The position numbers were made by a program, and so were the translations under genes. The notes beneath the pieces were generated by a model. The model ran no database searches. It saw nothing but the letters and a program-made list of their open reading frames with translations, and had not been told where the DNA came from. A stretch of DNA of 64,000 bases from Parasitella parasitica NRRL 2501 (taxonomy: Eukaryota > Fungi > Mucoromycota). The stretch covers positions 14,567 to 78,566 of the forward strand of contig MU619311.1 of NCBI GenBank assembly GCA_025201805.1. Direction: 5' to 3'. Positions 661 to 1,479 of the stretch are shown piece by piece. Each line of letters opens with the position of its first letter. Positions within the stretch are counted from its first letter, which is position 1.

Positions 661-933
661 TTTTCTATGTTGTGCACAAATGGGCATAATGGTGTACACG
701 TGAGCATTTCACATAGTATGCACTTTTGAGCATAGTATTAAGCATACGGGCAGATTATATGAAGAGCACATATGAGCTTAACAATAAGCACATGTGCTGT
801 TTTGTCTATTATGCACATTGTGCATATTAATGTATTATTAACCATATTCACTGTGCATAATAGCTTAGGCTTTAGTGGTATGCCCATTTGGGCATAATAA
901 GGTAATAATGTGCATACTACTTCGGCCGTAGTG
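661..933. mobile_element. Probable right end of a CACTA (EnSpm/CMC) DNA transposon with subterminal repeat array
   Basis: Ends in TAGTG at 929-933 (minus strand reads CACTACGGCCGAAGTAG). The preceding ~260 bp are packed with direct and inverted copies of a ~10-bp TRNGCAYA-like motif. The LINE RT homology stops here. The partner end is not in the window. Confidence 0.55.
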
Positions 934-1400
934 GTAGTGTGGTCCATATGTAATCTCTATTAACAGAGTCGTAGGCTGCTTTGATATCCAAAAATGCAAG
1001 TGTTGGTGACTGATCATATTGTTTTTGGTATTGCTGAATGAGTGTATGTAAATTGAAGGCTTGATCGATTACTCCACGTTGTCGTCGAAACCCGCCTTGA
1101 GCGATGTCCAGAGCATGCATATTGCCTAAAAGATCAGGTAGTAACAATCTTTCTAATAATTTTCTAAATGTTGATGTTAATGATATAGGTCTATAGTTAG
1201 CTGGATTATTGGGATCGTCTTTCTTGTATATTGGTACGACTTGAGCAGTGCGCCATGAAAGTGGAATCCAGCTATGCCTATAACAAAGATTGAGAAAAGG
1301 AGCTAATACTTTTGATAGTGGATAAGCGATAGGACGCAGCATTTCAGCAGTTATGTGGTCTGAACCAGGAGCTTTGCGCGATGGTAATTCTTTAAGGATA
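934..1400 (-). mobile_element. Non-LTR retrotransposon (LINE) reverse transcriptase fragment, truncated at both ends
   Basis: RT motifs KAPGSDHITAEML, WRTAQVVPIYKKDDP, NYRPISLTS, QGGFR, FLDIKAAYDSV. Homology ends before the YADD motif. Confidence 0.95.
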
Positions 1401-1472
1401 TCTTCGGTAGTATAGTGGTAAGTATCCCCGCCTGTCACGCGGGAGACCGGGGTTCAATTCCCCGCCGGAGAG
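1401..1472 (+). tRNA. tRNA-Asp (GTC)
   Basis: Acceptor stem TCTTCGG/CCGGAGA plus discriminator G; A-box TAGTATAGTGG; anticodon loop CTGTCAC; T-arm GGTTCAATTCC; intronless. Confidence 0.97.
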
Positions 1473-1473
1473 A

Positions 1474-1479
1474 TTTTTT
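1474..1479 (+). terminator. Pol III oligo-T terminator of tRNA-Asp
   Basis: TTTTTT one base after the discriminator. Confidence 0.85.

Follow-up and report, generated by a model that had tools for sequence, protein, structure and literature searches.

A LINE fragment abutting a tRNA-Asp gene of Parasitella parasitica and its probable origin in a tRNA-gene-specific family

A short LINE fragment in the genome of Parasitella parasitica NRRL 2501 (positions 934–1400 of the window, the 64 000-nucleotide stretch of contig MU619311.1 analysed here) is very probably a 5′-truncated member of a family, termed C, that inserts specifically into tRNA-Asp genes via target-primed reverse transcription. The fragment stands head-to-head with an intact tRNA-Asp gene, and the same geometry is found at tRNA genes on many other contigs and in other species. 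The evidence comes from the locus itself, from relatives of the fragment elsewhere in the genome and from the tRNA sequences found at their ends.

The tRNA-Asp locus in the window

ARAGORN finds a single tRNA gene in the window, tRNA-Asp(GTC), at 1401–1472 of the plus strand. The gene is intact. It aligns to the full Rfam model RF00005 (positions 1–71) at 60.2 bits, against a cut-off of 29, and a T6 Pol III terminator is read directly at 1474–1479 of the same strand. A full-length match above the gathering score, followed by a terminator, marks 1401–1472 as a tRNA gene. The genome contains seven tRNA-Asp genes, all of which begin with the same bases as at window 1401; three of the others are identical to the window gene at 72 of 72 positions. 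The upstream flanks of all seven are different. A downstream motif of the GGTGT..GTAG type is common to all seven, window copy included, and because of this match the 3′ side of the window gene, beyond the terminator, is recognized as the original, native locus. The motif sits 15–35 nt 3′ of the terminator in tRNA-Asp genes; in the window the corresponding region is 1480–1515. The window gene is therefore native on its 3′ side and bounded by a LINE on its 5′ side. The first-pass annotation had described a replaced native 5′ flank next to an intact tRNA body and terminator, a description upheld by ARAGORN, Rfam, the T6 tract and the comparison of the seven flanks.

The 5′ neighbour, at 934–1400 of the minus strand, is a fragment of a family-C LINE ORF2 truncated at both its 5′ and 3′ ends, identified by Pfam RVT_1 and by homology to copies on contigs C222 and C304. 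A minus-strand ORF at 917–1438 matches RVT_1 with an E-value of 3.9e-10. Its apparent start does lie within the antisense tRNA, as first noticed, at a GTG at 1438; this is an accident of frame and has no meaning. The fragment spans the pre-RT region and the N-terminal part of the RT, approximately residues 446–615 of the 999 that make up the complete family-C ORF2 on C304, to which its protein is 79% identical. The 5′ part of the element (endonuclease and ORF1) and its 3′ part are missing. In a whole-genome search the fragment is 99% identical to the LINE copy on C222, with differences at two of 350 positions, and the LINE homology extends from 1400 down to 934/935. The two copies part exactly between 1400 and 1401, with zero shared bases at the break, and the C222 copy goes on into the APE domain. 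Measured against this copy, the original statement that RT homology runs to 1400 and that the tRNA begins at 1401 on the opposite strand, with no spacer, is exact.

The left boundary of the fragment is formed by a second, unrelated non-LTR element, called LINE-X here. Its 3′ portion occupies 1–933 of the plus strand and continues off the left end of the window; it is delimited by the 3′ end shared among genomic copies. At least 17 copies occur in the genome, with differing start points, one common 3′ end corresponding to window 933, and unrelated flanks beyond. This is the usual pattern of 5′-truncated LINE copies, and LINE-X is a dispersed LINE. As a tRNA-directed element it was discarded, its 3′ flanks being unrelated to one another and having no tie to tRNA. 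The conserved 3′ end of LINE-X folds into hairpins and lacks a poly(A) tail. Further families have a related 3′ end of 55 nt, and one of these families is inserted in the tRNA-Phe-associated LINE on C137. The tRNA-like look of window 920–942 was rejected, as this is the conserved LINE-X 3′ end, and an Rfam RT-11 match at 762–898 (E-value 0.08, far below the family cut-off) was disregarded. LINE-X would have inserted later into the family-C fragment, separating or removing the fragment's 3′ part.

LINE families at tRNA genes

The first-pass annotation had proposed a non-LTR family in this fungus that inserts at a fixed position of tRNA genes. In its core the proposal is right: such junctions recur genome-wide, and the window copy belongs to a family of this kind. 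Its suggestion that the assembly be searched for the RT and the copies placed relative to tRNA +1 was followed with the C222 ORF2 as query; the LINE loci were matched to a partial tRNA list and to ARAGORN runs on the loci themselves. On this basis, LINEs of no fewer than six families (A, B, C, D, E and I) face intact tRNA genes in head-to-head orientation. Ten kinds of tRNA gene are involved, namely Thr, Lys (two anticodons), Phe, Met, Ile, Ala, Gly(GCC), Gly(UCC) and Asp, and the distance from the LINE 5′ end to tRNA +1 is 0–19 nt, mostly 0–4 nt. Families A–E have different 5′ ends, and their ORF2s, compared for A, B, C and D, are 35–37% identical.

The 3′ ends reveal where the elements enter the gene. 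A full-length family-A copy on C16, approximately 4.9 kb long with ORF1 and an ORF2 of 1123 codons, carries tRNA-Lys bases 1–14 directly at its 3′ end, followed by a different, older upstream flank; the 14 nt are thus duplicated. Stacked LINEs are likewise separated by stubs of 14 tRNA bases, from Lys on C3, Ala on C269, an Ile-like tRNA on C274 and Asp on C222. For Lys, Ala, Ile-like and Asp, as well as in other species, tRNA base 14 is thus the last base before the join to the LINE 3′ end. Independent copies therefore share the same target nucleotide at the 3′ junction and lie 0–19 nt from +1 at the 5′ junction, as is characteristic of a sequence-specific LINE. Junction counts are limited by the masking as N of large parts of LINE bodies, ORF1 and ORF2 included (loci L036, L037, L055, L056, L061, L062 and L140–L143). 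At the window locus the DNA to the left is masked as well (for example C75:11442–14566), and the copy's own duplication is reconstructed from family-C relatives: 1401–1414 of the plus strand, tRNA-Asp bases 1–14, would be the gene-restoring copy.

Family C illustrates the tie to one tRNA most clearly. Its complete ORF2 on C304 contains an APE domain, the RT and a C-terminal CCHC motif, and its copies have a common 3′ end. Six family-C 3′ ends could be read (four in this genome, one in Mucor ambiguus and one metagenomic), and all six continue into tRNA-Asp bases 1–14; at one of the four in this genome the adjoining 14-mer has two changed bases. The C222 copy is preceded at its 5′ end by the tRNA-Asp 14-mer, itself preceded by another family-C 3′ end. 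The exact 14-mer occurs 14 times in the genome, seven times within the tRNA-Asp genes and seven times as an orphan, against 0–1 occurrences of a control pattern. One of the orphans lies on C6, 1955 nt upstream of a tRNA-Asp gene, with a family-E LINE between the two and a family-D LINE beyond, the arrangement predicted by stacking. A LINE adjoins +1 in four of the seven tRNA-Asp genes: one of family C (the window), one of family D (C186) and two of family E. For tRNA-Phe, three orphan 14-mers are present.

How common such junctions are was assessed in a sample drawn without regard to LINEs. For 56 further genes on the Rfam tRNA list, 350 nt of upstream sequence were added, and 71 flanks were compared altogether. 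At least 15 of 63 listed tRNA genes, sampled irrespective of LINEs, bear a LINE 5′ end at +1 (ten of family A, four of family I and one of family B). Family I is confirmed as a LINE, with a tRNA at its 5′ end in all four loci fetched. Its 5′ ends are 100% identical at several loci; this identity and the near-identity of the window and C222 copies indicate that the families have been active recently. Truncated members are represented by the window copy and by an 82-bp stub on C3 that was noticed by eye; blastx over the 71 tRNA flanks finds no 5′-truncated LINE coding sequence directly at +1 other than the window copy. A search of the LINE 5′ UTRs with Rfam at a permissive E-value, aimed at self-cleaving ribozymes such as those of R2 and L1Tc, matched only tRNAs.

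Individual copies depart from the general pattern. Two have 19 extra bases between the LINE 5′ end and +1, one at C6:6586–6604 (L033) and one at tRNA-Gly (L059). The extra bases of the former resemble the motif at the 5′ end of a different LINE family, which points to a switch of template as reverse transcription was ending. The LINE at C51:507–5264, with a 1209-codon open frame and an ORF2 36% identical to that of family C, has neither a tRNA nor a stub of one within the 500 nt that precede ORF1. Perhaps this relative does not target tRNA genes, or perhaps its actual 5′ end is at another place.

The families conform to the general definition of non-LTR retrotransposons: they have no LTRs, are variably truncated at the 5′ end, share a common 3′ end and are flanked by a target-site duplication. 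Pfam Exo_endo_phos_2, Exo_endo_phos and RVT_1 match the complete relatives of families A, C and D in the order APE then RT; the window fragment itself keeps only part of the RT. Pfam finds no RNase H in these elements and no restriction-like endonuclease C-terminal to the RT, the hallmark of NeSL- and R2-type elements; the only endonuclease domain it finds is the N-terminal APE. A profile of eight ORF2s was compared with solved structures in the PDB. Its best match is human L1 ORF2p, along a stretch that reaches from the endonuclease to the RT (E-value 1.4e-38), followed by R2 at 1e-26 and the R1Bm endonuclease at 0.03. Family C is accordingly best described, from its domains (APE endonuclease, RT and C-terminal CCHC), as an L1-like LINE, a likeness that is read from the ranking of this PDB profile.

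Relatives extend beyond this genome. A protein search with the family-C ORF2 returns sequences from Mucor ambiguus, Circinella, Phycomyces, Phascolomyces and metagenome assemblies. The M. ambiguus relative (DF836860.1) is 73% identical and a relative on a JGI metagenome contig 75% identical; in both, the family-C 3′ end is followed by tRNA-Asp bases 1–14. The specificity of family C for tRNA-Asp is thus conserved. On KV440982.1 of Phycomyces blakesleeanus, a scaffold of 1.48 Mb, a LINE stands head-to-head with tRNA-Thr, and its 3′ end is followed by tRNA bases 1–15 and then by the next LINE. Relatives from P. blakesleeanus and from metagenomes share the head-to-head geometry with duplications of 14–15 nt, and on other contigs tRNA-Val, tRNA-Asn and tRNA-Cys occupy the same head-to-head position. 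Judged from these sequences, the tRNA-targeting habit is old and widespread in Mucorales.

This recurrence decides against an artefact. The assembly is fragmented (450 contigs), with breaks often at these repeats, and a chimeric join, or the chance adjacency of a randomly inserted LINE and a tRNA gene, might be suspected at 1400/1401. The same base-exact geometry is repeated at more than 20 other loci on different contigs, on the 1.48 Mb Phycomyces scaffold, in M. ambiguus and in several metagenome assemblies, and chance or assembly error is for this reason given practically no weight. The ends of contigs C79, C5, C41, C145, C160, C427 and C99 often fall 2–300 nt upstream of a tRNA gene. LINE–tRNA junctions seem to be a major cause of such breaks, which the insertion habit of the elements would explain.

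Insertion mechanism and choice of target

The observations as a whole are best explained if the family-C fragment is part of an element that inserted in this very tRNA-Asp gene, its cDNA ending in the middle of ORF2, and confidence in this reading is high. The geometry of integration is shown by the junctions. (i) The first, priming nick falls after tRNA base 14, in the A box, and the LINE 3′ end is always joined to the tRNA sense strand there. (ii) The other strand is cut at −1/+1, where the LINE 5′ end is joined. (iii) The 14-bp stagger between the two cuts duplicates tRNA bases 1–14. (iv) What remains is an entire tRNA gene facing the LINE 5′ end; beyond the LINE 3′ end comes the 14-base stub, still attached to the old upstream flank. 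In the window copy, reverse transcription or its template would have ended within ORF2, and the cDNA would have been joined at the fixed second cut. A copy that stopped early still meets +1 without a spacer because the second cut is fixed by the target. The window copy, cut off in mid-ORF2 and yet joined exactly at +1, in turn indicates that the target, rather than the element's own 5′ end, determines where this cut falls.

Regeneration of the gene by the duplication explains why tRNA genes are not lost even though LINEs occupy a quarter or more of those sampled, and the combination of a tRNA-internal cut with regeneration explains the head-to-tail stacking of insertions. A tRNA gene next to a LINE presumably stays functional. 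The first-pass annotation had suggested integration upstream of the gene, guided by TFIIIB in the manner of TRE5 and Ty3. This part of it does not fit, since the join lies after base 14 inside the gene and the 14-bp duplication rebuilds the gene.

The two ends of the window fragment invite a further explanation, in which a piece of LINE cDNA was captured once, independently of the endonuclease, during repair of a break at a fragile tRNA gene. Such capture would account for truncation at both ends, and indeed the fragment lacks its 5′ and 3′ parts and shows no microhomology at 1400/1401. It would not be expected to place the junction at base +1, exactly where all other family members have it, nor to involve an element from a tRNA-Asp-specific family, and the 3′ loss is accounted for by LINE-X ending at 933. 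Capture of this kind is very unlikely.

How the site is chosen is a separate matter. Under insertion by target-primed reverse transcription as outlined above, the endonuclease would read the tRNA DNA sequence directly, and base pairing between the nicked target and a read-through transcript may contribute as well. Alternatively, the integration machinery might be tethered to TFIIIB, TFIIIC or Pol III on active tRNA genes, the geometry of the complex fixing the cuts. One cut falls where the mature coding sequence begins, the other in the A box, where TFIIIC binds; many different tRNA species are used across the families; and the head-to-head orientation resembles that of TRE5 (PMC5911963). All three points agree with protein-mediated targeting. 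What speaks against it is the narrow, sequence-defined set of genes used by each family. Families A and I adjoin 14 of 24 sampled tRNA genes that have GCTCA at bases 10–14 and none of 45 that do not (Fisher p = 1.3e-8, a value that overstates the support, as tRNA genes of one species are not independent). Family-C 3′ ends are followed by the tRNA-Asp 14-mer only, and those copies of D and E that can be placed are at tRNA-Asp genes only. For tRNA-Gln, despite having bases 8–14 in common with tRNA-Asp, there are no orphan 14-mers, and none of the five genes adjoins a LINE. The insertion point, moreover, is within the gene and not approximately 50 bp upstream. The family-specific target sets argue for sequence readout over general Pol III tethering, and targeting by a protein tether is on balance rather unlikely as the determining principle; tethering could still act as a co-factor of sequence readout.

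The upstream flanks of tRNA genes have features of their own. Of 69 sampled tRNA genes (loci L069–L124 and L030–L035), 36 have a CACGTG box, usually TCACGTGA, at a distance of 58–85 nt upstream of +1; shuffled flanks contain 0.56 on average, and the region further upstream contains it in one of 65. The box is also present in non-repeat flanks. LINE families B and D carry the same box 55–75 nt from their 5′ ends; it is absent from families A, I and E and from the truncated window copy. The window tRNA-Asp gene, its own sequence unchanged, has lost the upstream CACGTG box. Other repeat families, extending over at least 200–350 nt, lie upstream of unrelated tRNA species and end 3–10 nt before +1, several of them in TGTAACA (L069, L071, L083, L088, L101, L108, L109, L112, L120, L121, L123, L124 and L068:2600–2907). 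These repeats may represent solo LTRs left by Ty3-like elements, which would then be directed to tRNA genes as well.

A more speculative proposal, considered improbable, makes target choice partly RNA-guided and the relation between element and gene near-mutualistic. Transcripts reading through the LINE 3′ end would carry the 14 tRNA bases in antisense as a tag. Base-paired to the sense strand of the nicked tRNA gene (bases 1–14), such a tag could set the start of reverse transcription, and a family would inherit its target from the tag adjoining its source copy. Full-length B and D copies would in addition bring in the TCACGTGA box at the distance natural in half of the tRNA genes, the LINE replacing the upstream control region as well as the first 14 bases of the gene.

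Relation to known systems

LINEs directed to tRNA genes have been reviewed only for the dictyostelids, or social amoebae (PMC5911963). TRE5 elements insert 40–54 bp upstream of tRNA genes via contact of the ORF1 protein with TFIIIB, irrespective of the tRNA sequence (PMC5911963). TRE3 inserts downstream of tRNA genes, and NLTR-B behaves like TRE5 (PMC5911963, PMC5006619). TRE5-A of Dictyostelium, an L1-group element, resembles the elements described here in its APE-type endonuclease, its two ORFs, a 5′ end that faces tRNA genes of many species and its use of safe sites (PMC5911963, PMC3159450). The differences concern the target. In place of an insertion approximately 40–54 bp upstream, the spacer here is 0–19 nt and the primary cut lies inside the gene, after base 14, with a duplication that rebuilds the gene; in place of tRNA use regardless of sequence, each family has its own, sequence-defined subset of tRNAs. 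The closest published position is that of NLTR-A of Dictyostelium purpureum, a non-LTR element located 2–6 bp upstream of where the mature tRNA begins (PMC5006619). NLTR-A possesses an RNase H and has an amoeba as host (PMC5006619); the present elements have no RNase H match, a 14-bp duplication and a fungal host. A text search of the article on NLTR-A retrieves no mention of its target-site duplication (PMC5006619).

Dependence on one tRNA species is a feature of the NeSL-related LINEs NeSL-1_TV (tRNA-Pro), LIN15_SM (tRNA-Arg) and LIN25_SM (tRNA-Glu), each of which uses one tRNA just as family C uses tRNA-Asp (PMC4640811). LINEs at sites inside tRNA genes have been reviewed only for elements with a restriction-like endonuclease (PMC4640811). 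The NeSL-related elements encode such an enzyme, whereas those of P. parasitica have an APE endonuclease and are, among solved structures, most like human L1 ORF2p. APE-type LINEs of the Tx1 and R1 clades (Dewa, Keno, Mutsu, R1 and TRAS) likewise have base-exact targets in multicopy RNA genes or repeats (PMC3706591, PMC4640811). The target of Dewa is the spacer of zebrafish tRNA-Leu arrays and not the gene body (PMC3706591), and no site-specific LINE of the Tx1 or R1 clade has been reported to use one conserved position in several tRNA species or to restore the gene.

Parallels exist outside the LINEs. Yeast Ty3 integrates at tRNA genes, only a few base pairs from where Pol III starts transcription, and the gene stays intact (PMC5911963), but it is an LTR retrotransposon with an integrase, is tethered by TFIIIB and makes a 5-bp duplication upstream of the gene. 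Dada DNA transposons occupy fixed sites inside tRNA or snRNA genes, with one family per target (PMC3706591, PMC8869645). They differ in being elements with a DDE transposase and 6–7 bp duplications, and are not retroelements.

The first-pass annotation knew of no such element in Mucorales, and a search of open-access papers and preprints likewise retrieves no description of a tRNA-gene LINE system of this kind in Mucorales or other fungi, though absence from this literature is not proof. The elements offer a natural, compact system for studying how an L1-type endonuclease gains base-exact specificity, and how Pol III transcription responds to replacement of a tRNA gene's entire upstream region. 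Set beside the known systems, what appears to be new here is the combination: L1-like APE LINE families in Mucorales that use one conserved position inside tRNA genes and repair the damage with their own duplication.
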